This document shows, piece after piece, positions 2-20,372 of a stretch of 64,000 nt of DNA. The DNA comes from Penicillus capitatus (taxonomy: Eukaryota; Plantae; Chlorophyta): assembly GCA_965649825.1 (NCBI GenBank), contig OZ287707.1, positions 612,292 through 676,291 on the forward strand, given 5' to 3'. The first letter of the stretch is position 1, and every line of letters starts with the position of its first letter. Made by a program: the position numbers and the translations under genes. The notes under the pieces are model-generated. The model searched no databases and was not told the origin of the DNA. It saw only the letters and a program-made list of their open reading frames with translations.

Positions 2-1387
2 GAAAGAAAAAGGATCAAGGCTGCGCCATACGGTCCACATGTGGAGGAGAGAGAACGGACGATTTCGATCCCAGCAATCCCGCAGACTGAGTATCGAGAA
101 ACACACTACGTGAAGACACGTGCAGGCTATGCGCTCCCAATGTTCAAAACGGGGAAATTTCCCGAGTGGTACAAACCGTTGTTACCACCACAGGCGAAGC
201 CGGAGAAAAAGAAGCACCAAAAGAGATGTACATCAAAGAAGAAGAAAGGATGTGGAAGAAAGAAAGGCCCGAAGAAGCATGAGAAAGCTAAAACAGAGCC
301 AAGTCCACTACCAAGTTCAACTCTAACGGCGGAATCCAAAATAGAAACGACAACACTTCCAACAGTCGAGGTGCCGTCCGAGTCGCCCGAGATCGAGGTG
401 GAGCCGTCCGAGTCGCCCGAGATCGAGGTGGAGCCGTCCGAGTCGCCCGAGATCGAGGTGGAGCCGTCCGAGTCGCCCGAGATCGAGGTGGAGCCGTCCG
501 AGTCGCCCGAGATCGAGGTGGAGCCGTCCGAGTCGCCCGAGATCGAGGTGGAGCCGTCCGAGTCGCCCGAGATCGAGGTGGAGCCGTCCGAGTCGCCCGA
601 GATCGAGGTGGAGCCGTCCGAGTCGCCCGAGATCGAGGTGGAGCCGTCCGAGTCGCCCGAGATAGTGGTGGAGCCGTCCGAGTCGCCCGAGATAGTGGTG
701 GAGCCGTCCGAGTCGCCCGAGATAGTGGTGGAGCCGTCCGAGTCGCCCGAGATAGTGGTGGAGCCGTCCGAGTCGCCCGAGATAGTGGTGGAGCCGTCCG
801 AGTCGCCCGAGATAGTGGTGGAGCCGTCCGAGTCGCCCGAGATAGTGGTGGAGACGTCCGAGTCGCCGGCCACAAAGCCAGTCGTTCCTTCGCCGCGCGA
901 ACAGAAAAGAGAGAAACTTCATGCAGTGGCGGAGAAACAACGCCGCAGTGAAGTTCCACGGGTGATTCTCGAACCTCATGAACGTACAGTGTCGCTTCCT
1001 ATTATCAGCGAGCCATCTCAGATCTCACCCGAAAGAGAAAGCGACGAGCATGAATTGGACCACGACAATTACGATGGCCCCGATGGCGATCTGGATAAAG
1101 GGAAAGCCGAGACAGGATTGCACAATACACCAGTCATTGGAGACTTGGAGACACAACACCTTCACGATTTCCTCATCTTAAGATCCGGTTCAGCCGATCA
1201 GGCCGAACTCATCCCCCTTCAGATGAAAAGGCAGAGCAGAACTTCCAGACAAAACTCCGATTTCATACGCTTCGGTCGCTTTTCTCGGACAGGAGAGAAA
1301 ATGGGTGCCATGCAGGCGGCAACAGCAATGCGGTTCGATGGCCGTTCAGAAGTCGAGGCAGAAGAAGAAATCTCTGTTGCAGTCTAG
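2..1387 (+). CDS. Uncharacterised protein with an acidic Pro/Ser/Glu decapeptide tandem repeat; 5'-partial
   Basis: The frame is open from base 2 to TAG at 1385-1387. It has a Lys-rich segment followed by 16 EI(E/V)VEPSESP repeats. No recognisable domain. Confidence 0.6.
   Translation, partial: ERKRIKAAPYGPHVEERERTISIPAIPQTEYRETHYVKTRAGYALPMFKTGKFPEWYKPLLPPQAKPEKKKHQKRCTSKKKKGCGRKKGPKKHEKAKTEPSPLPSSTLTAESKIETTTLPTVEVPSESPEIEVEPSESPEIEVEPSESPEIEVEPSESPEIEVEPSESPEIEVEPSESPEIEVEPSESPEIEVEPSESPEIEVEPSESPEIEVEPSESPEIVVEPSESPEIVVEPSESPEIVVEPSESPEIVVEPSESPEIVVEPSESPEIVVEPSESPEIVVETSESPATKPVVPSPREQKREKLHAVAEKQRRSEVPRVILEPHERTVSLPIISEPSQISPERESDEHELDHDNYDGPDGDLDKGKAETGLHNTPVIGDLETQHLHDFLILRSGSADQAELIPLQMKRQSRTSRQNSDFIRFGRFSRTGEKMGAMQAATAMRFDGRSEVEAEEEISVAV
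368..866 (+). repeat. 30-bp coding tandem repeat, ~16.5 copies
   Basis: Nine units GAGATCGAGGTGGAGCCGTCCGAGTCGCCC, then seven units beginning GAGATAGTGGTG; no spacers. Confidence 0.97.
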
Positions 1388-2511: not shown

Positions 2512-4304
2512 TCATGTCACTTTGGTATACTTAACTTGCTGTGCTGTTAAGTCATCAGACGTGACCCCTGGTTCAGCTACTTTGTCGATAAAAGAAGTGT
2601 CTGAAAGGACTTCCGGGGACGGAGAACGCGATCGCATCCATGCGGGAATGTATGTCGAGATAACTTCAGAGACAGCTGGCACAATCTCCGGTAGAACTGA
2701 TGTGGCAACCTCGGCGACCTGTGATACTGTGGGCATCTCCGATCCTTCTGGGAGGACCTCGGGGAGCACAGATACGACTGCCTTAGTCGCATTCGACAGC
2801 GCGGATGCTTCGGATCCTTCTGGGAGGACTGATGTGACGGCCTCGGCGACTTGTGATACTGTGGGCATCTCCGATCCTTCTGGGAGGACCTCGGGGAGCA
2901 CAGATACAACTGCCTTAGTCGCATTCGACAGCGCGGATGCTTCGGATCCTTCTGGGAGGACTGATGTGACGGCCTCGGCGACTTGTGATACTGTGGGCAT
3001 CTCCGATCCTTCTGGGAGGACTGATGTGACGGCCTCGGCGACCTGTGACACAGTGGGAATCTCCGATCTTTCTGGAAGGATTGATGCGACAGCCTCGGCG
3101 ACTTGTGACAAAGGGGGCATTACTGGAATTACTTCAGGGAGGACTGACTTGACGACCTCAGTGACCGCCGACAGTGTGGGTCGTTCTGACAGTCCAGGAA
3201 ACTCTGGGTAAAGAGAGGCTATCCCCTGTTCCAGCCTCTCTTTTAGCTCTTCGTATTGAGGAATCTCTGACGCTGGTGGCAGCAACGATGGCAGCTCAGA
3301 CAAAAGAGGGATCAATGCTGGAAGCGCAGAGTACAACGGCTGCATATCAGACGGATCGGGAAGGGGGAAGTCGATCGGTGGCCACTCAAGGTCCTCTGTT
3401 TTTCCAAACGGCCAAAGACAAAAGCCATAAGTTCTACAGACCTTCTTAACAGATGTTGGATCATGCAGCGTTCCCATAACAACCTAGAGCCGCATAACCA
3501 TCAGTACGCAGGAATGACAATGCCCTTTACCTGAACAGATCTTCTGAACATGTCTCTGAAACAGTCATCAAAATCTCTGAAAATAGAGATGACTCTACAT
3601 AGACGTATTGTGCTCTTTATGATCTGATCCACGTAGAAGTGCTTCCAGACCTCTTCCATGAAACGCACCATTGCTTTCTGCATCACACCTCTTTCTCTCT
3701 GCATTCTTGACTGCATTTCGTAGATCTCTTGCCTGGCAGACATTGCAAAGCCTCCTCTGGACAAATCCAAAGTTTGCTTTGTTGTCCACGACGTTGCATA
3801 TCTGCACTGCACTGCAGAAATCATGACTGGTCATGTCTTTGTTGCGCATTCCCGCTGCCAGCAACAGATCTGCGGGATAAGGGGTGAATATTGCTTGTCT
3901 TTTTGGGGTCTACTTACGAAGATCGGCAGCAAACTTCAGGCAATCTTCTTGCTCATCGCCTGCGAAATGTCGACAGCCCTGTTGACATCCACACAGACCC
4001 CCGTCTTCTCTCCATGGATTTTTCTCTCGGAGCTTTACCTCTCGGACGACGGAACCGATGGAGACTGGTGCATAATCAGGCCTGTTTATTTCCAATTTCT
4101 TAGCATCCAAGATCGTCGTGCAGTAGGCACAGTATCGAGAGACGGCTAAAATAGAAGAGTGCCCCGTCAACTCCGGACATGGAGGACAACCCCAAATGGA
4201 CCTTGAACGTTCTCAACACGCTCGTTCCCAACCTCATACGCCTTTGCTTCGAAGAACGTGAAGGTCAGCACTAGACCGCAGAGGAGCACAGCTGTGTGTG
4301 TCAT
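2512..4304 (-). CDS. Secreted saposin-B-type (two-domain) protein with an acidic repeat tail; multi-exon
   Basis: Signal peptide MTHTAVLLCGLVLTFTFFEAKA (ATG at 4304). Spliced exons give saposin-like Cys patterns YCAYC...CQQGC...EDCLKF...DFCSAVQIC and LCNVCQ...KKVCRTYGFC. GT-AG introns at ~4148-4203, ~3869-3913 and ~3485-3530. Confidence 0.6.
2690..3170 (-). repeat. Coding repeats PEGSEMPTVSQVAEAVTSVL / PEGSEASALSNATKAVVSVLPEVL
   Basis: 60-bp and 72-bp units; a 132-bp higher-order unit occurs twice nearly identically. Confidence 0.9.
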
Positions 4305-4487
4305 CCAGCGCAATACGGAGAAGAAAAACCACGAGAATGCTCAAAGATGTCACGTCAACAACGATTTTCCTGCCGATACACATCCGTCTGTCAACGTCCA
4401 TCGAAGAAGCATTTTACAACGTCGAAGTGTTGGCGGATTTGATTGATTGAAAAGAATGCATAAGTGTGATGCGAAGTAAGAAATCGT

Positions 4488-5939
4488 TTAGCAATAGAAG
4501 AGTGTCGTCATGCCTCCAACGACCAGCGCCATTACGAGACTGGAGAGGAGATTGACTTGATTATTGGAGAGGATATGGACACCCGTAATTCTACGGATGG
4601 AAGAATCAGCCGCCCCTTTGCCAGGGTAGTTCACCACTTTCTGCAGCTTGTCGTCGAAACCTGAGAATTGTAGCGTCGCTCCGAGCAGAGAATCCACAAA
4701 GGAGCCCAAGAGTCCTCCGACAGTTCCCAGTAAAACAAAGGGTAGGTATGGCAGTGCTGCCTGCATGAATCATCCACCTTCTGTCGCAACAGCGATAAGT
4801 GATCAGGGATGGACCTTAAGATGCGGTATGGATGGATAGAAGATCTGTGATGTCATCACGAAGGTGGTCACTCCAATCAACAGTCCTCCAAATGCACTAG
4901 CTCCCAAGCCCAACAGAGAAACGCCACCGTTCGTCCCTTCCATGCTTGAGATGAGCAACGTGTAGATCAACACGACGCAGTGCCTCACCTCTTGGCACTT
5001 TCCTCAGATCGGTGATGAGTCGGGGTTCCGATTTGGAAAGAATGCCAATTTCCGACGCCCATGTATCTCCGCAGCAGCAAGCATAACTTCCCAGACAGCA
5101 GCCAAAGAAGAAGACACTCGCAGTTGACAGGGCGCTACACGGGACACAAACTTCAGCGATGCATTCCTGTGCGCACGCGATCTTTACGTGGCCGAGAGGG
5201 CGATGTCTGGTTGTTGAAAGGCGACGCTCTGGCCAAAGAGCACAGCAAATAGTGTTGGCAATCCTCCATTGCACAGAACTTGTCTCCAGTTTCGTTTACC
5301 ACCCTTTTTGTTCTCCACCGTGAATTTATCTTTTGTCTTGGCTTTGTACTCTGTCCATAGAGAGGAACTGATAAAGAAGGCCAGAAGTTGAGCAAAGACG
5401 ACAGAACTGCTGAAGTGCGTCAAAAAGAAAACAAACCATGCGGCAACGAGGCCTGCATCAGTCAATCGCACACAAGCGCCAGATGCATCTGCGGCCGACC
5501 GGTGGTTGAAAGGGATTCCTTGGCCCAAGAGTAAAAACAAATCGCGGTGGCCAACAGAACGGAAGAAGGTAGTCTAGGAAGAAATCCAACTGCTTGTCCC
5601 CAGACGGTCCCACAAAACACCAGGAGAGCGACTTTGGTCCATCCCTTGCCCTATATCATGATGGAAAAGCACAGAAACAAAAAAGAGAGCGAGTTCTGCG
5701 TTACTTACTTGGAGAGGGGATCCGCCAGAATCGACAGAGATGTCTTCTGCGACGGCATCTCTTATTGTCGCAGAACAGAGTATGGCGGTTCGTTTGTTCG
5801 AGGGCGGATTCTTCGCGACAGGTGTTGGAAAAAGAGGATATATGTATCGATTCGAAGACAGAAAGTGCTGGGGGTGGCCGAGCTTCAGAAATGACGCTCT
5901 TCCAGTGTGCATCTCAGGCACGTTGACGCCGAACTTCAT
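4488..5939 (-). CDS. TMEM19/DUF92-family membrane protein (PGR/VTE6-related family); multi-exon
   Basis: Family motifs [38 protein letters not shown] and [12 protein letters not shown]...[10 protein letters not shown], joined by short introns. The 5' end is uncertain. Confidence 0.85.
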
Positions 5940-6369
5940 CTGTCTGGCGGAGGGAAGGAAAACAGCAGAAGGTTGAATGCTACGGTAAGACGATCGATGT
6001 TCACAGGCGAACGAACAGTCACATCCTTCAGTCGCGACGAATTAACCGCTTCTGTCGACGATCCTATCAAAAACAGCATTGTAAACAGAAATCGCGCACG
6101 AGATATTGAATCCGGAAAGAGGCTAAACGTAGACAACGAATTCTGCAGTTTTCTACCGTGAGTCGAGAGAGAAAGTTGCATATGTCCCATCGACGATGTA
6201 TTCTTTAAGATTCATTTTTCAACAGTGCCAGTTTTCGACCCTTTAAGGTAGTCGAGAGCGTGCCTCGGGAGGAGGGGCTCGTGGACTGCGAAGGGCCTTT
6301 TCTCTCTGAATGTTAGTGCATGCAACTTGGCACGCTCTCGCTTGATGATCATCATTTTCGTTTAGGTTT

Positions 6370-6597
6370 GTCACATCGTATCTGCCCCGTTTTTCGGGTC
6401 CTGTCCACCAAGGGAAGCTCATAAAGGTTTGCGACTTTACAGGGTTGGTTTTCTCTGGCTCTGAGCGTCAGATTGCTCACTTGTCTAGTGAAGTCTTGTC
6501 AATATTAACGTATAAATCTACAAATTCGAACTTTGAAACGCCACTGCTCTGTAAACGTAAAAAGTCTTCCGGTGAATACCTCTGAAGCGCGGCGATT
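6370..6597 (+). mobile_element. Degenerate type-B LTR remnant (B1)
   Basis: Contains the shared promoter block (TTCTCTGGCTCTG...TGCTCACTTGTCTAG), TATAAAT, and the invariant B motif AAGTCTTCCG. No TSD found; boundaries approximate. Confidence 0.55.
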
Positions 6598-6706
6598 ATG
6601 CATGACATAACTCAACCGCATGTTAAAGTTGTCGCCAAGATTTGCTCCGACGAAGTGATCGTCTTGTTCTGAGGAGTCATCTGTGTCAAAGGGCGCTGCC
6701 TGTCTT

Positions 6707-7212
6707 TGTCGCCGAGCGATGTGATATTGCCTTGTTCTGTGGGGGTCAGCTTGCGCAGGGGCGCTGCCTGTCTTGTCATCTGTGTGTCGGGACGATCTTC
6801 TCTGGTTCAGGTGGCGCGATGACTCACTCCTTCGTGGAGTCGCATCACCAGGGCCGTATAAAAGGAGGGGAATGGACGGACTTTTGCCTTACGATTTGTG
6901 TAAGACTTACCGTTTTCCTGCATCCTGGCGGATCATAACGCGGAGCACAACGTTCAACGCGCGCACATTCTCTACACGCCACTTTACCCTACCTTCGAAG
7001 ATCGTCTCAACCGGTTCCGTCAGGCAGAGGCCTCCGACTTGCAACAGCGAGGTGCAGAACGGGTCATCGACAACGCGGAAATCTGCCGTTCACAGCGAAG
7101 TTCAGAAGACGCCAGTGTCGACCTTATAGCGCCGCGCCCAGAAGACGTCCCTCCCCCGGACCATCAGACGCCTCTATGGTGACCAGGCCTCCGAGAATGG
7201 TTTTGGGCGACA
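6707..7212 (+). mobile_element. Type-A solo LTR (A1), 506 bp, nested in B2
   Basis: Ends TGTCGCC...GGCGACA; perfect TSD GTCTT (6702-6706, 7213-7217); TATAAAA at 6857-6863; internal conserved ORF. Confidence 0.9.
6925..7182 (+). pseudogene. LTR-encoded ORF copy A1 (putative CUG start; frameshift near the 3' end)
   Basis: LADHNAEHNVQRAHILYTPLYPTFEDRLNRFRQAEASDLQQRGAERVIDNAEICRSQRSSEDASVDL. An alternative frame PSDASMVTRPPRMVLGD aligns with A3 up to the LTR end. Confidence 0.7.
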
Positions 7213-7698
7213 GTCTTTTCAAATGGAATTAGGCTGCGTCTGGGGACATGGTTCTCTAGTTCTGACGCTCTGATGACTCGACTGCCTAGAAAGTCACGTC
7301 ATGATGCACATGATGAATGGGAAATTCGAACCGTTCTAGAGACCTTGCTCCGTGCACTTGTAAAGAAGTCTTCCGCTGTGAATCGCTTTCGTCCAACCCG
7401 ACCGGCGACAAAAGTGTCGAATTTGACTTCATTGCGAGTCAATTGTGTAATAATCCGATCGAAGCGACACCGAAGAATCGACGACATTATTTACCCTTCT
7501 CTTATCTCAGAACCCTCCCTCGCACTAGTTCTCGCCGGCGACTGTATTGGCTACGGTCTGTCTTCCCCAGCGAAATCCGACCATGCCTATTTCATCCTCC
7601 ACTGTTTATCCGCTAGTGTTCTTCTCCGGTGTCACAGCCTCGTGCTATAGAGCGATGAGAAACAGACGACGGCGAAGGCTTAAAGTTTATAAAAACTG

Positions 7699-8187
7699 TG
7701 TTACCATTTGCTGTTTCCTCCTGTTCTACCTCGATGGCTGTTTCGGACGGCCCAGTCGTTACCAGGTAGGTCCTCAGAGTGGACAACCACGAGCTCAACA
7801 CTTGCGTCTTCGGAATTTCTTTGCGAAGCGTAGATTTCTCCGTTGTCTATGTATAATACGCTCGGCACCCATTGGAGAAGGTCCGATTGTTCTCCCTGAC
7901 GGAAGCGGTTCAAACGCTCCTGAAAGGTAGGTAAAGTGGAGCGTAGTGAACGATCGCACGCGAGATGTCGTGCTCAGCGTCGTCGTTGGCCAGGGTGGCA
8001 ACGCCTCGGAGAAAAGAAGATAAAAATTAGCGGTCAAAATCTTACAAGGTTTCTTTCCTTTTCGCTTTCACAGAACTACTGAATGCTTCAACGTCCCACC
8101 TTTGTACCGGCCCGACGACATGACTTCCTAGGCAGATGAGTCAGCACGTAAGCAGAGCCAGAGAAGAGCGCCCCCTTCACAGAACGG
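7699..8187 (-). mobile_element. Type-A LTR (A2), 5'-truncated; ORF frameshifted
   Basis: Promoter block TGACTCATCTGCCTAGGAAGTCATGTC, GCCACC-CTG-G at 7993, fragments LANDDAEHDISRAIVHYAPLY / NRFRQGEQSDLLQ / DNGEIYASQRNSEDASVELVV, and 3' end GGTAACA. No TSD. Confidence 0.75.
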
Positions 8188-8457
8188 TGTCGCCGGTCGG
8201 GTCGGACGCAAACCGTAAAACAGCGGAAGACTTTACACGTACTCGGAGCAAGGTTCAGAAAGGTCGAGATTGTCCATTATATACTCGCGTGGTGACAATA
8301 CGTTCCTAAGCATATGAGTCAACCTGTACGCAGAGCCAGGTGAAAGGGCCCTTTCACAGAAAAGAAGCCCTTCTGTTGTGACAATAAGCGTCCTTCCCAC
8401 CAAATGACTCACACAGAACAAGGCAGTCAGTCACATCGCCATGACGAATCCCACACA
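8188..8457 (-). mobile_element. Type-B LTR (B3), 270 bp
   Basis: 3' end CCGACCGGCGACA, AAGTCTTCCG motif, TATATAA and the promoter block. The 5' end is diverged and no TSD is recognisable; it directly abuts A2. Confidence 0.75.
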
Positions 8458-8551
8458 GATTCCAAACAGATTCCGGAATCTTCCAAGAACATTCCACTTT
8501 GTTACTAAAAATAGACCCGCGGCCTTGATGCGACATCTCCAAACCCTACCC

Positions 8552-8558
8552 TATAAAA
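8552..8558 (+). promoter_or_regulatory. TATA box upstream of the orphan ORF
   Basis: CCCTATAAAAGCG about 130 nt upstream of the ATG at 8690. Confidence 0.45.
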
Positions 8559-8689
8559 GCGTTGTAGAAGTACAGTTTTCGTCTCTCTTTGTGTTAAGGT
8601 TCTTTTTGCCTTTCAAAAGTTTCGCACTCATACGATTCGAATCACAAACCACCGAACAATCTACTCGACTGTAGTCTGTTTACCACTAG

Positions 8690-9589
8690 ATGACACACAG
8701 CGCGATTTTCCGTAACGTCCTTGGACGGAAAAAAATCAAACGCCACATACTTGACTCTTTTATGAATCGGTTGCAAAATGAACACTGGATAGCTTACAAC
8801 ACGTTGCTCTATGGAAAAAAAGCGCACCGACCCTTCACGGATTGCAAGTCGACAGTGCGATTTTTTTCCGTGTTTTGTCGAATATTTCAGTGGTATGATA
8901 AGGACCCTGTAGCGGAAGAGTTCATATACTATACGAACCAGCAAGGGAGGCGGGTACCTCGTACGTGGGCGGATTTTTTAGACGTGCTCTATGTCGCGGT
9001 CCAGGAAGAAGGGTTCTCACTGAATCTCGAGGAGTCGTTTGCCTACCTTGCTCATGCTGTACTCTGCGTAGCTTGCATGGACGGCGAGGGTTTGTCAATG
9101 TTTGTGTTTTCGCTTGATAGATACAACGTGGCCAATTGGTTCATACGCATCTTCTTTGCTGCGTTAGAAACCTCCCTTCCACCTTCGTTAGTAAATAATG
9201 TGCCAGATCGGGAACCGCAGCCGCGGGCGGAGACGTTGGGCGAGGGGAGCGGGGAACCGCAGCCGCGGGCGGAGACGTTGGGCGAGGGGAGCGGGGAACC
9301 GCAGCCGCGGGCGGAGACGTTGGGCGAGGGGAGCGGGGAACCGCAGCCGCGGGCGGAGACGTTGGGCGAGGGGAGCGGGGAACCGCAGCCGCGGACGGTT
9401 CGTGGGGTCAAAAGGTACCGTTTGCGTAAAACGTATGAGAGGGAGATGGCAAGACGCAGGAGGGTCGGACATCTATACGGTCTAAGGTCTACTCCGGCAA
9501 GAGATAAGAGTTTATCTACAATGGAGGAAGAAAATAAACAGGGACATGCCGAATGTTCTTCGCGTTCTCGGAAGAGGTCGAGGACATAG
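8690..9589 (+). CDS. Intronless orphan protein (299 aa) with a 14-aa repeat and a basic C-terminus
   Basis: Uninterrupted ATG-TAG ORF: globular-looking N-terminal ~170 aa, EPQPRAETLGEGSG x4, and an Arg/Lys-rich tail. Family not recognised. Confidence 0.55.
   Translation: MTHSAIFRNVLGRKKIKRHILDSFMNRLQNEHWIAYNTLLYGKKAHRPFTDCKSTVRFFSVFCRIFQWYDKDPVAEEFIYYTNQQGRRVPRTWADFLDVLYVAVQEEGFSLNLEESFAYLAHAVLCVACMDGEGLSMFVFSLDRYNVANWFIRIFFAALETSLPPSLVNNVPDREPQPRAETLGEGSGEPQPRAETLGEGSGEPQPRAETLGEGSGEPQPRAETLGEGSGEPQPRTVRGVKRYRLRKTYEREMARRRRVGHLYGLRSTPARDKSLSTMEEENKQGHAECSSRSRKRSRT
9212..9394 (+). repeat. 42-bp coding tandem repeat (4 units plus a partial)
   Basis: GAACCGCAGCCGCGGGCGGAGACGTTGGGCGAGGGGAGCGGG repeated identically. 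Confidence 0.97.
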
Positions 9590-10041
9590 TGGAAAATCAT
9601 GATGAAATGAAGCAGTGAGTCGGGTAAGGATGCGTTCGAGGTTGTTTTGAACTCGAATTCGTTGTCACGGGCCCATTGTCGAGGTGAGCGGAACTAAGGA
9701 GAAGCGGATGGTAACGGGGACTTGCCAACTTTGAGCGATTTAGCGACCTAACTCGTTATTTGGTGGCGGATTCTTCACACTTCCACATTCCTTGGCGACG
9801 TGCGGCGCATGACAGTCCACCACATCGCCATGTCCCAGGTCTCCGGAGTCGTCGCACCAGACTAGAGATCGATCGCTGTCGTGGTTCACCGCGTTTTCAC
9901 CGTGTTTTTGTTTGTTTTTGTGTGTTTGCGTAGGCGTCGTGGATTTTTCTTTTTCGCACAGCGAACCTTTTTCTCGTGGGTGTTCTAGGACTGCTGATCT
10001 TTTTCTTCGCCCTTGCGGGATGCTGCTATTCGAAACGTCCA

Positions 10042-10316
10042 TGTCGCCAAGATTCTCCTTGTCGATGTGACTGTCTTGTTGGACAACGGCCAGGTGGTGT
10101 CAAGGGCGCTGACTGTCTTGTCATATTAGCTCATTAGAGGCCAAAGGGCTTTTTTATGGTATAGGCAGCAGCTTTCTGACTCACCTGCCCATGAACGTCA
10201 TGTCACTGCGCGCATATATAATAATAATAGACAAGTTGCATGTTCGCACACCTTTTCTGAACGCTCGTAAAGAAGTCTTCCGCTTGAATCGTTTTCGTTC
10301 GACGCGACCGGCGACA
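10042..10316 (+). mobile_element. Type-B solo LTR (B4), 275 bp
   Basis: Ends TGTCGCC...GGCGACA; TSD GTCCA/GTCCT (4 of 5); TGACTCACCTGCC block, TATATAA and AAGTCTTCCG. Confidence 0.85.
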
Positions 10317-11132
10317 GTCCTGCAAAAAAATGTAGCTCAAAAACTGCAGTTTTGTAACCACCGGAAGTGGTAGAGCCGTAGCATAACCACCCAGGTGTAA
10401 AACCTCGTCTTGGGCCCATGACGGAGCAGACACTATTCGACGCCCCAGAACGAACACGTTACAATCAGTATCGTAAGAACGAACACAGAAAAATCAACAC
10501 AGATCGATCCGACTGTTCGGCTTCCCTCCTTTATTGTTTTGCCGACAATTGAGTTTTACACCAGGCGCGCCGACCATCGGTCGCGACCGATGACGGCTTT
10601 CAAGCTAACTTCCCCATAACGCTAGGGATGTGGTTGGTAAACATGAGCTGAAGTTCACAGATTGATAGGTGAAAAAGTTAGGAAATCCATAACCACTTTG
10701 GGTATTTAAGGCCGACATCCACTTTGTAATAACTCGTGTTCGTATCCAAGTGAATCTGATCGCGTTTGTGACATATTAACACGCGAAGAATCGACTTATA
10801 TTGAAACACATCGTTACATCGATTCCCAATAGATAGGCAAGCGGGTTATGCTCATATATCATCCAGAGGTGCAATACGGAGCAATCGGAGGAGAACGCTA
10901 GAACTCAGATGCTTGTAGGACGGGTAGGCGGGCACTCTGGAGTCGAAATTGAACAAGGGCGTGGAGGAAGGCGAGATCGGGAGGAAGGAGACCAGCGAGT
11001 CCAATGGCTGCCGTGGTGAGAACGGTTTTGTACAAACCAAAATTAAGACGAGAGATGTATGACGGTGGATACGGAAGATGTGTATTTTTCAGGACGCCTT
11101 GACAACTGAAGGAGCCCAGGCAACTAACTAAC

Positions 11133-11799
11133 TGTTGCCGGTGACTGATGGGGATGCGTCGGACATTGCGCGCCGCGTGCGCGCGAACGCGTACAGGCGA
11201 AGCGGAGGAACAAGATTGAGCAAATGCAGATGCTACCGCATGGTGCGGCCTGTCACATAAATACCCCTGGCCCACGCGGACTCCTGTCACGTCAGGAAGC
11301 GGACAGCCTGTCCGGTCTGCGGGGCCAGAACCGTTCTCGCGTACCCGTCAGTGACATTATCCAGAAGGGCCCAGAAAGGGGGGGAGGTAGGTCACAACGC
11401 AACATGAGGAATGACACCATCATAACGTCATGCATGACGCCATCAAAGAGGCCAAATAAAGGGGGTTGTGTAGGTTTTATGTCTTTTGTAAGAAATCTTT
11501 GTTTGGGTTCACCCTGGCTGATAACGGCGCACACAATATTCGACGGGCGACTATCCATTACGCTCCGCTTTACCCCTCGTTTGAAGACCGACTTAACCGC
11601 TTCCGGCAAGGGGAATCTTCGGATCTCCGTCAACGTGGTGCAGAACAAGTCGTTGACAATGCGGAAATCTACGGCTCTCAGCAGAGCTCGGAGGACGCAA
11701 GTGTTGAGTTGGTGGTAGCTTCACCTGAAGACCTGATTTCTCCCGGGCCCCCAGACGCCATCATCGACATGAGACCCACTATCAGAACGTTCGGTGACA
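11133..11799 (+). mobile_element. Type-A solo LTR (A3), 667 bp
   Basis: Ends TGTTGCC...GGTGACA; perfect TSD CTAAC (11128-11132, 11800-11804); intact internal ORF. Confidence 0.88.
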
Positions 11800-11852
11800 C
11801 TAACTGCGTTATACAAGAGGAGGGGCACGCACGCAGCACAGGATTTGACTAA
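11514..11852 (+). CDS. LTR-encoded ORF copy A3 (putative CUG start; reads out of the LTR)
   Basis: TTCACC-CTG-G start; LADNGAHNIRRATIHYAPLYPSFEDRLNRFRQGESSDLRQRGAEQVVDNAEIYGSQQSSEDASVEL...TFGD| crosses the LTR end at 11799 and stops in the flank. Confidence 0.65.
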   Translation: MADNGAHNIRRATIHYAPLYPSFEDRLNRFRQGESSDLRQRGAEQVVDNAEIYGSQQSSEDASVELVVASPEDLISPGPPDAIIDMRPTIRTFGDTNCVIQEEGHARSTGFD

Positions 11853-11998
11853 GGTACGCACGAACAACCGAAGCCGGACCAAAGTGAGGCCGGGCAAGCT
11901 AGTCGATAATGTGGGAGACCTTTAAGAGCTTTGGACGTGACAACGGACAAATGATGAGAAAACGTAGCCAAAGATCAAACCATGCACCAAGGTACTAC

Positions 11999-12300
11999 TG
12001 TCACGATTGTCATCATGATGAAGAGCTGAAGGATGATGGTCCAAGAAATGCCTCATCATCATAAGAGGCACTGATGGCCAACAGCTATTAATGGCCACGT
12101 CAAATCAAACCCAACACTATAAAAGGAAGATTATTGTCACATTAATCATCTTTTGTAAGAAACCCTGTTGCGTCTTCCACAGCCACGTACTTATCCATAT
12201 CAGTACTTAAAGGAAGAGATTCCTTGAGCTGGAAACTGCCCAATGAAAGCAAAGAAGCCTGTTATGGGCCACAAAAACGGGTAAAGCAGGTGTATTGACA
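11999..12300 (+). mobile_element. Additional LTR-like remnant
   Basis: Starts TGTCACG; CTATAAAAGG at 12117-12126 is followed by TTTTGTAAGA and GTCTTCC, as in the A and B LTRs. No TSD found; boundaries approximate. Confidence 0.4.
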
Positions 12301-12476
12301 TTCGGAAGAAGTAAGAAGGAAAAAGTGACTGGAAGCCCAATTCGCGACCAAACAAATGGACTGTTGCATTTCCGCTTGTAAATGATTGTTAGAGAAAGTG
12401 TCACAGGGTTAGCTTCGCTGTCGTATTATCTGGACAGCTGTCCCCCTTCTGGGTCACATCAACACCTAGATACTTA

Positions 12477-13038
12477 TGTCGCCTGGCGATGGGACTAATG
12501 TCTTGTTGTCGTGGGGTTCCACGCGGTGGGGGGACGCTGGTTGAGTCATCTGAGGCGCTTTTCTTTGGTTCTGGCGCTAGGATGACTCACCTGCCTAGGA
12601 AAGTCACATCACCAGAACCGGATAAGAGGTGGAGGACGGCTTGAGTTTTGCCTTTCTGTTGTTCCTTGTAAGACATTCGACTTTGACGTGTGGCCACTCT
12701 GGCAGACGACGACGTTGAGCGAAGCATCACGCGCGCTTACGTGCCTTACGCACCTCTGTACCATACGTTCCAGGAAAGCCTTAACCGGTTTCGACAAGGA
12801 GAACGCTTAGGGCTTCTCCAACGGGGTGCTGAGCGAATTGTTCATAACGTAGGTCTCTACGACACACGAAGGAGCTCTGAAGACGGCGTTGCCGACATTC
12901 CCATATTTCTTGAGGAATTGGTGACCCCTGGTCCTGTCGAGACACATCTAGAAGGAGAGGGTGAGCAAAGCGCCCCATCAAACGACGACGTAGAAGCGCC
13001 TTCTGAAGCAAGAGAGAATCTTCCCCCGAACGGCGACA
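12477..13038 (+). mobile_element. Type-A solo LTR (A4), 562 bp
   Basis: Ends TGTCGCC...GGCGACA; perfect TSD ACTTA (12472-12476, 13039-13043). Confidence 0.9.
12559..12629 (+). promoter_or_regulatory. Shared LTR U3 promoter block (clearest copy)
   Basis: TTTTCTTTGGTTCTG-N9-TGACTCACCTGCCTAGGAAAGTCACATCA followed by a TATA-like GATAAGAGG. Homologous blocks are at ~6452, 6798, 7252, 8115-8167 (-), 8280-8350 (-), 10150 and 13570-13630 (-). Confidence 0.7.
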
Positions 13039-13079
13039 ACTTATACGCGCCCTTGTATGGAACTCTGTCTCGTTTGTAA
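12699..13079 (+). CDS. LTR-encoded ORF copy A4 (putative CUG start; reads out of the LTR)
   Basis: GCCACT-CTG-G start with in-frame TGA at 12684; LADDDVERSITRAYVPYAPLYHTFQESLNRFRQGERLGLLQRGAERIVHN...PNGD| crosses the LTR end at 13038. Confidence 0.65.
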   Translation: MADDDVERSITRAYVPYAPLYHTFQESLNRFRQGERLGLLQRGAERIVHNVGLYDTRRSSEDGVADIPIFLEELVTPGPVETHLEGEGEQSAPSNDDVEAPSEARENLPPNGDNLYAPLYGTLSRL

Positions 13080-13099
13080 TCCATCTCCGTGTTTGTGAC

Positions 13100-13355
13100 A
13101 TCCTACCTCGACGGAAAGAAACACACAGTTTCGTGTTTACGTTTTATGTGCGTTGCTGTGAGATTCGCTCGGAAAGTTGAAGCAGTGCGCGTTCGCGGTT
13201 TGCTGTTTTTTATAGAATAATTGCTTTTACAGCTCCTTTTTGGGAAGATCAGGAGTGCATCTGTATCTAAGTGTAGCTGTGACGGTGCGCCCGCCATCGC
13301 CTCGGGTCTTCTGGCTAAGGACGCTGCCGTCGGGACAACCGTCCCTGTGGCGACA
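13100..13355 (-). mobile_element. Partial LTR-like remnant
   Basis: On the minus strand it starts TGTCGCC and contains GGCGATGG and CTATAAAAA. No matching TSD. Confidence 0.4.
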
Positions 13356-13467
13356 CGCCAGCGGAGGATCACTGGAAAAACGTGACGAGAGGCGTGAGAA
13401 GACACTTACGTAATGATGTGACGTACCTTTCTCTGGGGTACTTAACGCGAGAACTGTTTGCTGTACT

Positions 13468-13739
13468 TGTCGGCGATCGGGCCGGACAAAGATTAACAGC
13501 GGAAGACTTGTTACAGACTGTTTTCAGAGCAAGGTGAAACAGGTGCGGATTGTACCTTCAAATACCCCCGTTGTGACATGACATGCCCAGGCAGGTGACT
13601 CAGCACTGCTCCAGAACCATAGAAAAAGGCCCCTTTCCGGCCCGAAACCTTCACTGACAAGACCCCGAGTGTCCCAGACCAAGGTGCCCCCCCCTCCTCC
13701 ACAAGACAGTCACATCAGCACATCGCCATCTTGCCGACA
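13468..13739 (-). mobile_element. Type-B solo LTR (B5), 272 bp
   Basis: Ends TGTCGGC...GCCGACA; perfect TSD GTACT (13463-13467, 13740-13744); promoter block and AAGTCTTCCG present. Confidence 0.9.
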
Positions 13740-13908
13740 GTACTCGTCCACAGTTATGTAAATAACCATTGCTGACGAGTCCTCTTACGCGGTTCACCAT
13801 CCGGTTCGGACTCGGCCGACAGGTCGACGTTCACAGTAGCAATCAATGTTCGAGAGACAGAGACCGGGAATGACTAACAGGAAAGAGGAAATGAAATGAA
13901 ATAGGCAA

Positions 13909-15296
13909 TCAGGTGTTTCCGCGCGGGGCACTGGAAAGCCGAACGAACGGGCGGATTGGAAGTACCATGTAATCCAGGGTAACAAACGGGGCTTTGTGTT
14001 CTCCAAGAAGTTGCTCGTGAAGTGTCTTCGATATGAAGACTTTCAGGTTCTTACTCGGTGTCCAATCTGGAAGGGGCTGTCGTGAGGTATCGCGTTTCCT
14101 GCGATTCAGTCGGCGCGGGGCGGCGAAGTGCGATTCTTCGAGTTCTGCTGCCGGTATCTTCCAGCGGGCTGCGTTCTGTTCTGCGATGGCTGCTTCTGGG
14201 TCGATGTCCGTGTCGACGTTACTGATGGCTACTGGAATCTTGTCTTTCGTGGGCGACAGGTACGGGTTGTTGACCGTGAAAGTTCCGATGTCGTCGAGCT
14301 CCAGGTCCCATGTGGCACCGGCGCATTCTAGGCAGCGGTCGAGCGATCTCTCGAACTGCTTGACCAGGTCTGTTCGGATTTGCACGTAATATCTGCCGCC
14401 GTGATCAGATCGGATGTCTTCCACATACTCTTTCAGGTTCGTGATCTTCAGCGCCCGTTCTAGGCTGATGCCGAGTGGACGGAATGAAGGACGGTCTCCC
14501 TTCAGGGTCACTGGACAGAGCTGGAAACTGCGTTCGTCGCATCGGATCTGGGCCTTGACCGCTTGGGTTTGCTGCCGGATCGCTCGTGTCTGGGCAGATC
14601 TCTGCACTTGGGTGGGGTTCAGTGGTTGGGATGTCTCCTGGGGCATGGCTTTGCGGGCGCGGCGTCACGGTATGGGCGGGTCGAGGCGCTGGGCACTGGT
14701 GTGTTCTCTTCGGGTGGGGGTGTGAACGGGGCCATGATGCTATGGAACCGAAGGCAGGACTGCATTTCTTCGAGGTGACGGTTGGCTCGATTGTAAGACG
14801 CCTGGTTCTCCTTCGGGATGACGTTGGAGTAGGTCAACAGGTTGCACTGAACTCCTTCGAGGTCTTTGGCAAGGGCTGACAGGAGATCTGATTGAGTAAC
14901 TTTCTCTTGGAAACGAACGATCTGCGAGAGACAGGACACCGGGGAGTTCGAGTCGTAGATGGGCCCTTCGGGAGCCAGCAGAAGCGATTCTCTGGAGCGC
15001 TCGTGTAGGCTAATGAGGCGGAGCTGTTCGGTGTCTCGACGCTCGTGGGCAGTCAGGTATGCTTTGATCTTCTCGACGAGCTGTGCGGAGTCCAGGGTGG
15101 CGGCGACTTGAGTGGAGCAGGCCTTGACAGCGGCGTTGACCAGTATGAGCTCGTCCTTGCTTATAGCCGCGAACACCTCGGAGGACCGGCGCAGGTCGCG
15201 TCGGTACCGAACTGTGTGGGTCGCTTGGGCTACCGCCGTGCGCACGGGGTTGGGGGCGGTGCCAGGGCCTTCGGACGTCGAGCCGGAAGGCTGCAT
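13909..15296 (-). mobile_element. Probable LINE ORF1 (gag-like) remnant, split into two overlapping frames
   Basis: ORFs 14619-15296 and 13909-14646 overlap by 28 nt in different frames. The C-terminal PRRLNRR..TPSKNLKVF..VLPIRPFVR followed by a frameshifted FQC resembles I/Tad-type ORF1 just before a lost Zn knuckle. It is on the same strand as, and upstream of, the ORF2 remnant. Confidence 0.45.
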
Positions 15297-15748
15297 CGTG
15301 CGTTGTTCTCGTGTGCGGACACCGGCGTTCGGCAAGGGAAAGTGGCGGGCAGAACGTAAGTGTCGTACGGAATATCGCGGTTTGCTGTTCGTATGCAGAA
15401 ACGTACAGAACACAGTTACAATCCGGTGATCCAGCGCGTCCGTTTTTATGTTCATTATTTCTAGATTATTATTATGATCGTAGTCCATCTGTCCGAGGAA
15501 AGCTTCGCGTTCTTACAGAGCTAAAGGTAAACATGCGTTCACGTCCATGTATTCATATGCTACAGGTGACATGATACGCCATGTAAGCGCCCCTTCGGAG
15601 ATAGAAGAACCCTTGGATTCCAAGACAGTCACGATGTGACAGTCTTGTCATTCTGACACTATAACAGCGTGCACACATGTTACATAATGAGTCATCATTT
15701 TCACAAATGCCCGATCTGCTCCCATCCCTTCTTGCCCTGCTGTCACTC

Positions 15749-18700
15749 TCAATCATCCCCTCTTGGCCCCTTCTCTCTTCTAGGTCGCTTCCCAGGCCCG
15801 TGAACTACACATAGAAACGATATATGTCGGCGAAATGCAGCATAGCAGTAAAGAAAGCAAGCATACTCTGCCTTGCCCGTCGAATATAAGGTCTGAATTC
15901 TTCAGCCTGTTCGTCCATTATGGTTGTTCTTTGTAGAAGCCTATCATTAGCACCCATGTCTCTCATGTATTTCTCCCAGAACTCCGTATATGCCTGACAC
16001 ACACCAGTCCCGACGAGAATAGAAGATGTCGGTTTACCGTTCGAAATTTTCGAAGATCTTCTCTCCACATGTCTTCGGGACTTCGGGCGCTGATTTCGTG
16101 GACGCACATCTTGAGCTTTTCTGTCTTCTGCCGAAGTTCTTCGATTTTCTCGAATGTCAAATGATCCATCGGCATCTTCAGTAAATAGTTAAATGTTGCT
16201 TTGCGCGTCACGTCTTCTGCTGTTGTCTCGACTTCAAACACGTCATCAACTGCTGTCTCTGTTTGATGCGTTTTCTTATAATCTAGCAGCTGTTTGTCGA
16301 ACTTCATCTGTTCCATGTCTTTGATGACATCCTTTTTCTTCCGATTTGTCAATGCCAGCTTTCCCTCCGCAACTGCTGTGATGAACCGAGCTTCATTCTC
16401 GAGGACATTTATCAACTGTTCGGCATTCTGTACACATACTCTTCCAAAAGCAGCATATAGGAGAGCAACACTTACGGAGACGATGGATGCCTTGCGTTTA
16501 ATGTAATACGCCATTCGAACACGAAAAAATTCAGAAAGAATGTCTGTGACGTTCGCATATCTCTTAATGCGCCCGTCATGACTCAACAACACCATGTTCG
16601 CCGTCGATAGTTTGGTTGTCAGTTTTAGGCTTTCGGCAATCCCTTGCAGTTGTAAACGCTGCATCTGCTCAGAATCCACGTAGATTGTAATGTTGACGCG
16701 TGTATCTGTCGTTCTGTCGAAATAGTCTGGGATAAGTGCTGGCGTATCTGGTCCAGAAGGGACCATAGCTTTCTTTAGGAACTCTTTGTAGTCGTCAGTC
16801 CATTTTCCCAGAGGCAGTTCGGAGATCTCGATAGTTCCTTGCTCTTTGTTCGCTGAATACACCCCAGTCGTTAAGATGGACTCATCCTCAGAATCGATGG
16901 ACTGGATTTTTCCATTGAAGCCCATATACCAGGGCGTCATCTTTCGAGGCTTTTCTCCATCCAGCATTCCTAGTAGATTGTTGACGATACTAAGAGGATT
17001 GTAATTGGGTATGCAGGTACTCCATCCAGTGCCAATGCCTTCGGCGCCGTTTACCAGGACCATGGGAATGATTGGTACATACCACTTCGGTTGAATTGAC
17101 ATGCCATCGTCTAAAAGATACTGCAAAATATCGTCATCTTGTTTAAGAAAGATGGAACGGATCAAAGAACCCTGGGAAGTATACAGGTATCGCGGACTAG
17201 CAGCATCGCTTCCTCCCTAAACAAAATAAACACACAGGCAAATGTTTGTGTTTCTTACCGTCGACATTGCTCACCTGCAACCGTGTTCCAAATTGTCCAC
17301 TGGGTTCCAAAAGGTTGATATTATTAGAGCCGACGTAATTCTGAGCGAGTTTGATGATCGTGGCGCTAAGGCTCTCATCTCCGTGATGATATGCCGCATG
17401 CTGACTAACGTATCCATTGAGTTCGAGTACCTAGATGAACCAATGAACACATGTGTTGGTGGTTTGAGTAAACAGAACCTTCATTTCCGTAGGACCCTTC
17501 TTCAGGATACTGTAAACGATCTTTCTCTGTCCGACTTTTAGCCCGTCCATCAGAGCAGGAATCGATCGATCAATGTCTGTCACAGAGAATAGAATAAGCT
17601 CCTTATTGACAAACTCTGTGTATGTCAGTTGGGATTGATTATGATCGATGAACGTTCCTTCGTGGAAAGATGCCAACCACTCCTTTCGATCGTTTGCGCG
17701 TCCCTTGGAGAAAGCCATGTCAATGGCCTCGTCTGCTTCCCTCCCTGTTATCATGATACAGTCAACAAAAATAGTGGTCTTGTATACTGAATCGGCTAAC
17801 CTTCGTACGCAAACACTCTTGTCTTAGAAGGAAGTGCCTTGAAGATGTTGACGGCATCCTGCCGTGTGAATGCTCCCAATCCCTTGTAATACTTCACCTT
17901 CCACTCTTTGGTTCCCCGTCCAAGGGCTTCCTTCCAGTGCTCATACTCTGGCAGCGTGTAGAAAACCTTCTCCTCTTCTCCCTTTGACGCCTTTTAAAAC
18001 AGGATTCAATTCTTCTTTGGTCAAATAGAAAAATAACACAAATGACCTTTATAATCGGCGTCAGAAAATCCTGGATAAAATTGGAAAGCCGAAGAAGTGA
18101 AGGGTGGTGGTGGTGCAGGAAGTTAATTATCAGTCCTTTGATGTGCGAACCGTCGTAGTCAGGACCAGTCATCATCAAGATACGGTCGTATCTTAGATTT
18201 CTAGTATCTGTATATTCCTAAAAACAATAGATACCGTACAAACAATGCATTAATTTGTTAGACAGTCTTCTATTACTGTGTTATCCCGGAGGCCAATGAT
18301 TTCTTTGAGGTGCTGGATTTCCTTGTTCTTCGAAATCATAGCAATAGTGGCATTTCGCACATTTAAAAGTTTTCCTCTATACGTGTTTTTCGTCTCGTTG
18401 GCAAGAAAACAATGACTTACTTCAGAGGGAAGACCCCGAACTTATCTCTGCCGATGATCCCAATCCCAGCCATTGCTAGGGCTTTTGCTGAATCGCCTTC
18501 AGTAAGAATTAATGTGCGATCTTGCGAGTTTTGAGTACCCGCAAAATTTGCATCGTCAAGTTTTGGAACTGCAAACAACAAACACGTTCGAAGTTTTGTA
18601 CATGAAAGAACTTTGTTTACTTTTAATTCTCGGCGACGCCGTGTCATCAGATTTCTTTAGCGGCTGTGTCGATTGGGTAAAGCTCACCAGCAGATCTTCC

Positions 18701-20109
18701 ACACCACATCGTGCCACCGCGTCGACGAACTCGTCTGAGAGGGCGCATCTTGAACCAAACTTTGCCACTCGGCTTGCCAAGTGTTCCTTTGTCTGACTAT
18801 CGAAGGCCGGATTCTCGATCTTGCAGTTGATGAAAACATGTAGATAGTTCTTGACATGCGGCGCGCGCAGCGTGGTGTCGGTCTTCCTGGCGATCCTTTC
18901 AGCCAAGGCATCGGATACCTGATCAACAATGTGGTTCACATGAGAACCTCCTTTCATCGTGCAGATCGAATTGACAAAACTCATCTGCCACATCATTCCT
19001 TCGATCCACTCCAGATCTATTGTACTGTCCGATTTCACCTGTTGAAATTCTCCGTCCGATCTCGCGACGACAATCTCCCATCGGTCATTAGGCTTGAAGT
19101 GCACTCTGGTAGGAGGTCCTGCTGTCCTCTCCCCCAAGAAAAGATCCACATAGTCTTCGAATGTATGGACGGGGAGCATGAATCCGTTGAAGGAAACGTT
19201 GACATCTTTACCAAATAATCCAGCCATATCGTACGTACGCTTTCTCATGATCGACACAATGTCGTCATCCAAGCGCGTCACACCAAATTTTTGCAAATCA
19301 GGTTGGAAGGAAATGCGGGTCCAACTTCTTGTCGATATGGAAGCTGTGACTTCAGGCACATGTGTGTCACGCATATTGTTCGAGAAGACCTGTCTGTATT
19401 TTCTTCTCCCATCGCTCGTTTCGACTGTAAACTTGGTCGAAAAGATGTTGGCCAGTTTAGCACCGAGTCCATTACAGCCTCCTGTCATCTGCATGCAAAA
19501 AACCATTAGCAGAGATCTGCATGTTGAATAGTTTAATCTGCACAGATTTTACCTTCTTCTCTCTGTCATTGAAGTCAGAACTAGTCAGAAGACTGCCAAA
19601 CATGAGTTCTGGAACGTAGATGTTCTCTTCCTTGTGCATTTCGATGGGCACTCCTGCACCATTATTCCAGATTTCTATAAGATTCTCCTCCTGAGAGAGG
19701 CATTGGCCGATAGACATCGACAATCTGAAAGTAAGAGTTTACCGGGTTGACTTGGACGCGGAGTTCGTTCATCGACGCGTCGCGCACTTTGTTATCAGCG
19801 GCGTTGACCAGAATCTCATCGAAGATTTTGTACAGACCAGGGACAACGCTGACAGCTTTGCACACCATACGTTCACTGTCGTGGACCCATGTTGTGTAAG
19901 ATTGACTCTCCACGCTTCCTAGAAACAGCCTTCGGATCGAAGGCTTTTTCGGAAGACTGGCTTGTACCTATGTACGTGTCTGGTCGTAAGAGGATGTGCT
20001 CTAGATGGGTCTTCTTTTGGAAGACTTCTTCAACAGCGTTCTTGGCCTGCGGCAGAAAGGAAGCTGAGGTTAATATGAGGATATTAAACGGATAGCGAAC
20101 CTGAGACAT
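15749..20109 (-). CDS. TOP2: DNA topoisomerase II, multi-exon, with a very short C-terminal tail
   Basis: QKKTHLEHILLRPDTYIG, FDEILVNAADNK, GGCNGLGAKLANIFS, LILTEGDSAK, GPDYDGSHIKGLIINF, DGLKVGQRK, YHHGDESL, SGQFGTR and ASPRY (catalytic Tyr). ATG at 20109; the last intron (GTATGC...TGTAG) gives a stop at 15749. Confidence 0.97.
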
Positions 20110-20372
20110 CGTTGACAGAAATGGAGCAGCAAAGAACCGTGAACGGACGTGGATGCGAACGAACTGCGAACGAACGGATTCACAGGGGGATGCAATGGAA
20201 TGCAATTACACAAAAATGGAGACTGAATGATGACACATCTATCAACGACGCAGCGGTATTTGTCAAGAAACCAGATATCTCTACAGAGGTCTCGGCGAAA
20301 CCTGAAAGCGAAGAAACTGTTCAGCAGTCAGAAGAGACAAACAAAACGGAGGTTTGAATCACACTTGCATTG

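Follow-up and report, generated by a model that had tools for sequence, protein, structure and literature searches.

Mouse mammary tumour virus (MMTV) carries the open reading frame (ORF) of its superantigen in the U3 part of the long terminal repeat (LTR), where the frame has its own start and stop. In the yeast retrotransposon Ty1, ORF1 starts before the end of the LTR and the primer-binding site (PBS) lies inside GAG (PMC4974528). Murine leukaemia virus (MLV) makes glyco-Gag from a CUG in favourable context that lies 264 bases upstream of the Gag AUG, this CUG being at nt 357, downstream of the PBS at 146-163 (PMC3265304), and non-AUG N-terminal extensions of human genes have also been detected phylogenetically (PMC3105428). 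Here, we have analysed a 64,000-nucleotide stretch of the genome of the green alga Penicillus capitatus (contig OZ287707.1, positions 612,292 to 676,291; the whole of this stretch is called the window), in which a first-pass annotation, made from the letters of the DNA, had picked out four LTRs of one type, type A, that share an ORF of around 100 codons reading out through the LTR 3' end. Taken as a whole, the best explanation for these LTRs, and in our view a likely one, is that they encode a CUG-initiated N-terminal extension of the Gag-protease protein of an LTR retrotransposon family with Ty3/gypsy gene order. This layout is unusual but not unprecedented and can be seen as a variant of the Ty1 and glyco-Gag arrangements.

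The first-pass annotation suggested that the LTR ORF would be the N-terminal part of Gag, or of an accessory protein, in an intact element, and four full-length relatives now support this, although they represent sister families and not the window's own subfamilies. A profile search of 5.8 billion public proteins gave 36 clusters, all of them short (95-197 aa), without Pfam domains and derived from two ENA long-read assemblies. These short database ORFs are read-outs of solo LTRs into the flanking DNA, examples being the LTRs at L004 and L009, which have target-site duplications (TSDs) of CTGAC and GCGGG, respectively. An exhaustive HMMER search of 1.84 billion representative proteins returned 53 matches. 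Two of these, P0038 (724 aa) and P0041 (670 aa), are long and carry the LTR domain at residues 3-106, and the others are again short ORFs; when P0041 in turn was used as the query, P0069 (734 aa) and P0071 (663 aa) came to light. In each of the four full-length elements (L005-L008; Table 1) the two LTRs are 100% identical to each other, the PBS, TGGTTTCGGAGCGAGG, follows the 5' LTR and the purine-rich GGAGTTGGCGGGAAGCGTGG precedes the 3' LTR. In all four, an uninterrupted frame leads out of the LTR, across the PBS and into an ORF1 of 663-734 aa, as the first-pass annotation had envisaged for gag, and none of these intact elements has a stop right after the LTR. Read as codons, their PBS gives (M/V)-V-S-E-R-G, and in P0041, P0038 and P0069 the LTR domain is followed by MVSER and then by a hydrophobic helix. 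We consider it highly probable that the LTR ORF encodes the N-terminal part of ORF1. As in Ty1, ORF1 opens upstream of the LTR end in L005-L008, and the PBS serves both as a primer site and as codons.

Beyond the PBS, ORF1 consists of a hydrophobic helix, a coiled coil, a Trp/Cys-rich stretch, a second hydrophobic helix and a second coiled coil, and its C-terminal part holds a C-X2-C-X3-H-X3-C knuckle followed by a retropepsin (Asp_protease_2). The first hydrophobic helix has a Kyte-Doolittle 19-residue mean above 2.4. In P0041 the two transmembrane-like helices lie at residues 106-135 and 253-283, and the same regions are found in P0038, P0069 and P0071. Two such helices without a recognisable capsid domain are unusual for a Gag; a search of ORF1 for a capsid domain gave no match in Pfam or PDB, and the AlphaFold2 model of ORF1, built from five sequences, reached a predicted local distance difference test (pLDDT) score of 51.6. 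P0041, P0038 and P0069 share 42-43% identity over their whole length and, when P0041 is compared with P0038 (42% identity), the LTR-coded domain ranks with the better conserved regions. ORF1 ends in CAA AAA AAC and a stop in 4/4 elements; across the AAAAAAC heptamer, which looks like a conserved -1 frameshift site, the -1 frame of ORF2 is open. The domains of ORF2 are RVT_1, RT_RNaseH, Integrase_H2C2 and rve, that is, reverse transcriptase (RT), RNase H and integrase (IN). The resulting order of protease, RT, RNase H and integrase is that of Ty3/gypsy elements (Metaviridae); RT precedes integrase in ORF2, and the order is not that of the Ty1/copia elements (Pseudoviridae), in which respect the type-A family differs from Ty1.

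The LTR ORF is under purifying selection, and its conservation goes far beyond chance. The comparison of two window copies, A1 and A3, that had been counted by hand in the first-pass annotation proved exact, with 30 of 37 codons giving identical residues and 16 of those 30 doing so through different codons. The claim that the frame reaches the LTR end in the same phase in each copy also stands: A3 and A4 are unbroken from the CTG at its start to the last LTR base, and the frameshifts that had been allowed for the other two copies amount to one frame change in A1, owing to which the ORF frame meets one stop ahead of the LTR end, and at least four in A2. Stops were counted in 12 unbroken copies, comprising A3, A4 and ten LTRs taken from public assemblies: over the 1192 codons between CTG and the LTR end the ORF frame has none, while the other two frames contain 27 and 47. 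Mean pairwise differences at the three codon positions are 0.28, 0.23 and 0.61. By the Nei-Gojobori method, the proportion of nonsynonymous differences between copies (pN) is 0.18-0.35 and that of synonymous differences (pS) is 0.57-0.88, so synonymous sites are saturated between families. For the closest pair, L001 and L002, dN is 0.023 and dS 0.374, a ratio of 0.06. The dN/dS comparison that had been proposed as a check therefore came out well below 1.

This constraint covers a considerable part of the LTR. The LTR-coded frame stays open for 75-113 codons across the 12 diverged copies and takes up 47-65% of the LTR in the 11 copies measured, in good agreement with the earlier estimate of roughly half, whereas Ty1 has, as the first-pass annotation stated, only a few codons in its LTR, to be compared with 83-113 in unbroken type-A copies. 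Like the MMTV superantigen gene, the type-A ORF is a protein-coding frame inside an LTR, but it lies 3' of a TATA-like box, has no stop within the LTR and appears to be the start of ORF1, unlike the self-contained frame in U3.

The conserved frame begins with CTG in 14/14 copies, each of which has A at -3 and G at +4, and amino-acid conservation starts exactly at this codon; only 9 of the 71 other Leu codons in the LTR ORFs are CTG. In 13/14 copies the frame contains no ATG from the stop that precedes it to the LTR end and, with no in-frame AUG upstream, the LTR-coded part needs a non-AUG start, a point that the first-pass annotation had not raised. From CTG to the LTR end ATG is absent from all frames in 11/14 copies; A4, for example, has no ATG in any of the three frames of its LTR-coded part. 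Nine unbroken copies, together 2742 nt, contain no ATG where 15.8 +/- 3.4 would be expected from synonymous resampling, and none of 1000 resamples reached zero. The avoidance arises through codon choice. Of the Asn, Asp, His and Tyr (NAY) codons that stand before a codon starting with G, one has T and 79 have C as the last base, compared with 47 and 65, respectively, before other codons (Fisher p = 2e-12). The rest of ORF1, taken as a control, has T:C ratios of 26:33 before G-starting codons and 65:82 otherwise (p = 1), and contains 13.7 ATG per kb, the first of them 43-60 nt past the LTR/PBS junction. Judging from this pattern of codons, translation of ORF1 probably starts at the CUG, which would again set type-A elements apart from Ty1 and its AUG start. 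As with the non-AUG extensions of human genes, a conserved coding stretch precedes the first AUG in frame and has a near-cognate codon at its 5' edge, but the type-A extension belongs to a mobile element rather than a host gene and is duplicated in every LTR.

The way in which the LTR meets the PBS separates the copies into two subgroups. In subgroup I (L001 and L005-L007, to which A3 and A4 belong by phase) the LTR directly abuts the PBS, and the first ATG straddles the junction, its A being the final base of the LTR and its TG belonging to the PBS, in frame and in the context G-A-C-ATG-G. In subgroup II (L008-L010) the PBS is in the same frame and the junction ATG is absent, the next ATG in L008 being 15 codons on; L008 has a 2-nt spacer separating the LTR end from the PBS, and such a spacer follows from phase in L009 and L010. 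L008 also lacks the second half of the LTR domain, its LTR being 386 bp long. A long and a short isoform may both be made in subgroup I, a proposition to which, from the position of these codons, we would give slightly less than even weight.

There are likenesses here to glyco-Gag. An in-frame CUG in favourable context is found ~250-340 nt upstream of the next in-frame AUG, both a long and a short form exist on paper, and the long form would be tied to membrane insertion. There are also differences. The CUG of type-A elements is upstream of the PBS and inside the LTR, whereas that of MLV is downstream of the PBS. The extension of glyco-Gag supplies a signal sequence, whereas the hydrophobic helix of the type-A protein comes after the AUG, so that both forms would have it. 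In addition, subgroup II has no junction AUG, and CUG use in type-A elements is proposed from sequence. Pfam, PDB and protein searches gave no sequence relation to gammaretroviral Gag.

The LTR domain itself has no Pfam family and no PDB chain in sequence searches at E up to 10, and no relative outside these elements was found in Pfam, PDB or the 1.84 billion representative proteins. AlphaFold2 modelling of the A4 ORF, with 39 sequences, gave a pLDDT of 59.8 and one helix at residues 27-46, with low confidence elsewhere; this model and that of ORF1 are too poor for a fold search. Among 36 sequences, columns with at least 90% identity are few and clustered. The near-invariant residues are Tyr, Pro, Leu and Tyr in Y-x-P-L-Y, Phe-Arg, Arg-Gly-Ala-Glu and, later on, Tyr, Arg, Ser and Glu, and a variable acidic, proline-rich tail of 30-50 residues reaches the LTR end. 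These features suggest that the LTR-coded 85-113 residues may be a mostly disordered tail, with a short helix and short linear motifs, placed before the first membrane helix, and this pattern is consistent with a cytosolic tail ahead of a membrane anchor. Within the tail, Y-x-P-L fits a generic tyrosine sorting pattern, and there is also an R-R-S-S-E-D-like stretch; a specific function in sorting or in regulation by phosphorylation is a lead and not a result. We offer, as a tentative and rather doubtful proposal, that a green-algal lineage with Ty3/gypsy order has independently evolved a glyco-Gag-like device, in which an LTR-encoded, mostly disordered and CUG-initiated tail of ~100 residues with short motifs stands before a capsid-less structural protein with two transmembrane helices, and in which leaky scanning to the junction AUG sets the isoform ratio.

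In the mechanism that we propose, the genomic RNA of an intact element would begin in the 5' LTR, the downstream half of which would be the 5' end of ORF1 and is presumably U5. The frame would open at the CUG, cross the LTR end and have the PBS read as codons, and reading would continue into the ~700-aa protein, in which two hydrophobic helices and coiled coils come before a Cys/His knuckle and a retropepsin; a -1 shift at AAAAAAC would then lead into RT-RNaseH-integrase. Since the LTR-coded stretch is AUG-free, ribosomes that scan past the CUG would reach the junction AUG or one just beyond it, and the junction AUG in subgroup I may yield a second, shorter isoform beginning at the first hydrophobic helix. 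The TATA-like box was located in eight copies, in which CTG follows it at 68-95 nt, and most copies have TGTAAG between the two. This motif would match UGUAA, the signal for polyadenylation in green algae, and would thereby place the coding part in U5.

A number of points weigh against this interpretation. The families of A1/A3 and of A4 have no intact full-length member among the matches. The name Gag rests on position, knuckle and protease, as there is no recognisable capsid domain. TGTAAG is absent or altered in L001, L006 and L007, which makes the assignment of U5 weak, and TGTAAG as a universal polyadenylation signal was discarded because it is not in all copies. A consensus fold of the 70 nt from CTG in 13 copies contained no pairs, so a conserved hairpin after the CUG was not found there, and GTCAC(C/T)CTGG could be conserved as a DNA or RNA signal. 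Alternatively, the whole stretch could be a 5' leader that is not translated and owes its conservation to RNA or DNA roles such as U5 function, packaging or primer contacts, with Gag made from the junction ATG. The GAC ATG G context of that ATG in L001 and L005-L007, an ATG-free stretch as is typical of leaders and the mostly disordered prediction for the domain would all suit this. Against it stand the three-base periodicity of substitutions, the low pN alongside saturated synonymous sites and the single frame that stays open in 12 diverged copies whilst the other two fill with stops; L008 of subgroup II does not have the junction ATG at all, and no conserved RNA structure was found. We regard an untranslated leader as highly improbable. 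The ORF could alternatively encode a separate small leader protein, or be an upstream ORF that ends just past the PBS, rather than belong to Gag. All 36 of the first-round database matches are short, and at L001-L003, which retain a 5' LTR and PBS, the frame fails to reach a long ORF1. However, these three are decayed, interrupted copies, in which ORF1 is broken once by a nested insertion, once by a premature stop and once by a frame change plus a nested insertion, and for that reason they are no evidence for a short leader protein; their post-PBS pieces share no similarity with one another. The short matches are solo LTRs read into their flanks, as the TSDs indicate, no stop occurs inside the LTR-coded part of the 12 unbroken copies, and the frame is continuous in 4/4 elements with 100%-identical LTR pairs, all of which makes a separate leader very unlikely.

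The start codon itself can also be questioned, since the domain might be translated from another near-cognate codon or from an AUG spliced in from upstream. In several copies, GTG, TTG, ACG or ATC does occur after the last in-frame stop and ahead of the CTG. In A4 and L008, however, the nearest in-frame stop is only 4 codons 5' of the CTG, and CTG is the only near-cognate codon common to all copies as well as the point at which amino-acid conservation begins. As for splicing, the promoter-like block and TATA-like box are in the same LTR and there is no AG acceptor before the CTG. Such another start is unlikely. Lastly, the conserved core could have been captured from an ordinary host gene, which the first-pass annotation had named as a result that would speak against its reading. 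No host gene, Pfam or PDB match was found, and the 53 matches among the 1.84 billion representatives are all short LTR ORFs or the N-termini of ORF1, leaving a captured fragment exceedingly improbable.

Some further candidates and observations concern the internal region and its priming. At L003 11025-16004, nested behind the type-A 5' LTR, is an RT-IN element that has the same PBS and whose LTRs, 108 bp long, are 100% identical; it was considered as the type-A internal region and rejected as a different, nested element. Its 575-aa ORF1 begins after the PBS and has only the protease in common with the type-A ORF1. The primer tRNA was not found in the window or in L001-L004, a PBS of initiator-Met type was ruled out on reading the DNA, and a metagenome scan with the 19-mer of LTR end plus PBS gave two unrelated chance matches.

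In the window, all four type-A LTRs of the first-pass annotation were found where it had placed them (Table 1), within a cluster of LTR remnants that spans 6.4-13.4 kb. A profile built from the database relatives and run against the six-frame translation of the 64 kb found the type-A domain in these four copies only. The PBS 12-mer was not found in the window, and tblastn with ORF1 and ORF2 against it gave the LTR domain only and no internal-region match. A1, A3 and A4 have TG..CA ends, which make up a short inverted repeat, and 5-bp TSDs, with no PBS and no ORF1 or ORF2 beyond the LTR domain in the window, and are therefore solo LTRs. A2 is a 5'-truncated LTR, its 5' end being without the starting TG and its promoter block aligning by eye with that of A4 from ~65 nt into the LTR. 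A3 has no stop in the ORF frame and 3 and 8 stops in the other two frames, and A4 likewise has no stop in the ORF frame; the open frames extend past the LTR into the flank, to 11849 in A3 and 13076 in A4.

Table 1. Positions of the type-A and type-B LTR features in the window and of related elements at the L loci (positions at the latter are those of the locus named).
Feature	Position	Strand	Details
A1, type-A solo LTR	6707..7212	+	506 bp; TGTCGCC..GGCGACA ends; within a type-B LTR
A1 TSD	6702-6706 and 7213-7217		GTCTT; perfect 5-bp duplication
A1 TATA-like box	6857		TATAAAAG
A1 TGTAAG	6899
A1 proposed start CTG	6925..6927	+	ATC CTGG
A1 probable LTR-borne 5' segment of ORF1 (Gag-protease), broken	6925..7212	+	profile match 6904-7179, E 4e-41
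A2, type-A LTR without 5' end	7699..8187	-	3' end GGTAACA; adjoins type-B LTR at 8188
A2 proposed start CTG	7991..7993	-	ACC CTGG
A2 probable LTR-borne 5' segment of ORF1, broken	7699..7993	-	two profile pieces, in different frames
A3, type-A solo LTR	11133..11799	+	667 bp; TGTTGCC..GGTGACA ends
A3 TSD	11128-11132 and 11800-11804		CTAAC; perfect 5-bp duplication
A3 TATA-like box	11455		AATAAAGG
A3 TGTAAG	11487
A3 proposed start CTG	11514..11516	+	ACC CTGG
A3 probable 5' segment of ORF1, unbroken	11514..11799	+	95 codons and first base of the next; profile match 11460-11849, E 1.3e-45
A4, type-A solo LTR	12477..13038	+	562 bp; TGTCGCC..GGCGACA ends
A4 TSD	12472-12476 and 13039-13043		ACTTA; perfect 5-bp duplication
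A4 TATA-like box	12621		GATAAGAG
A4 TGTAAG	12667
A4 proposed start CTG	12699..12701	+	ACT CTGG
A4 probable 5' segment of ORF1, unbroken	12699..13038	+	113 codons and first base of the next; profile match 12687-13076, E 3.5e-52
Type-B LTR	10042-10316
Type-B LTR, split by A1	6632-6706 and 7213-7411
Type-B LTR	8188-8340	-
Type-B LTR	13573-13636
L005, full-length element	9694-15671		LTR 623 bp; TSD CATGG
L006, full-length element	9800-15682		LTR 541 bp; TSD GTCCC
L007, full-length element	9820-15743		LTR 545 bp; TSD ATAAG
L008, full-length element	9743-15380		LTR 386 bp; TSD GATAT
L005, AAAAAAC site	12004-12013		candidate -1 frameshift site
L006, AAAAAAC site	12166-12175		candidate -1 frameshift site
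L007, AAAAAAC site	12196-12205		candidate -1 frameshift site
L008, AAAAAAC site	11983-11992		candidate -1 frameshift site
L008, subgroup II	9743-10128
L009, subgroup II	7748-8344
L010, subgroup II	up to 8338

The type-B LTRs that lie among the type-A copies are ~275 bp long, have TGTCGCC..GGCGACA ends and carry no conserved ORF, and the flanks of the complete copy are GTCCA/GTCCT. A promoter-like block, TGACTCA..CCTAGGAAAGTCACATCA, is common to type-A and type-B LTRs. At L001, a 99.6%-identical type-B pair surrounds only ~1.2 kb. Also within the cluster, at 8690-9589 (+), is an ORF of 299 aa that lacks a Pfam match and contains, at 9210-9400, ~4.5 tandem copies of a 42-bp unit. It has homologues at L003 8007-9209 (-) and 20090-20507 (-), which lie in a duplication of 94-97% identity (6175-8424 and 18516-20507), and it stands head-to-head with a type-A LTR both in the window and at L003 8007-9209. 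Beside A4, at 13909-15488 (-), are adjoining ORFs of 245 and 289 aa without a significant Pfam match; part of this stretch is repeated at L002 1546-1795, and it is probably another repeat family. L002 also contains, at 3603-8446 (-), a LINE-like element whose endonuclease-RT ORF (Exo_endo_phos_2, RVT_1) is preceded by an ORF of 521 aa.

Elsewhere in the window, the long ORFs at 41-1387 (+) and 2512-3477 (-) consist largely of short tandem peptide repeats, with 10-residue units in the first and longer, imperfect ones in the second. Two divergent paralogous ORFs at 50713-52268 (-) and 54134-55645 (+), the minus-strand one being split over two frames or exons, are, on recognition by eye, what we take to be beta-amylase-like. 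A CP26-type light-harvesting protein is encoded at 61988-62632, its best match being a Chlamydomonas PSII-LHCII chain (E 2.6e-86), and on this basis the host is chlorophyte-like, the sense in which 'algal' applies to it.

Searches of an incomplete body of literature turned up no description of such a layout in algal elements, which is weak evidence of novelty. LTRs are usually treated as non-coding, and here about half of each is under protein-coding constraint, through which LTR families whose neutral sites are saturated can be related to one another by way of the encoded peptide. Each solo LTR also yields a spurious small 'gene', as illustrated by the 36 short ORFs in public protein sets. 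The invariant CUG, together with an avoidance of ATG that is specific to the LTR-coded stretch (1:79 there and 26:33 in the rest of ORF1), is an unusually clean signature of what would be non-AUG initiation and leaky scanning in a green alga. The PBS appears to be under multiple constraints, being a primer site, a set of codons and, in subgroup I, part of the first AUG. Finally, the solo LTRs keep a promoter-like block and a frame that is open into host DNA, and so they may be a source of chimeric transcripts and proteins.

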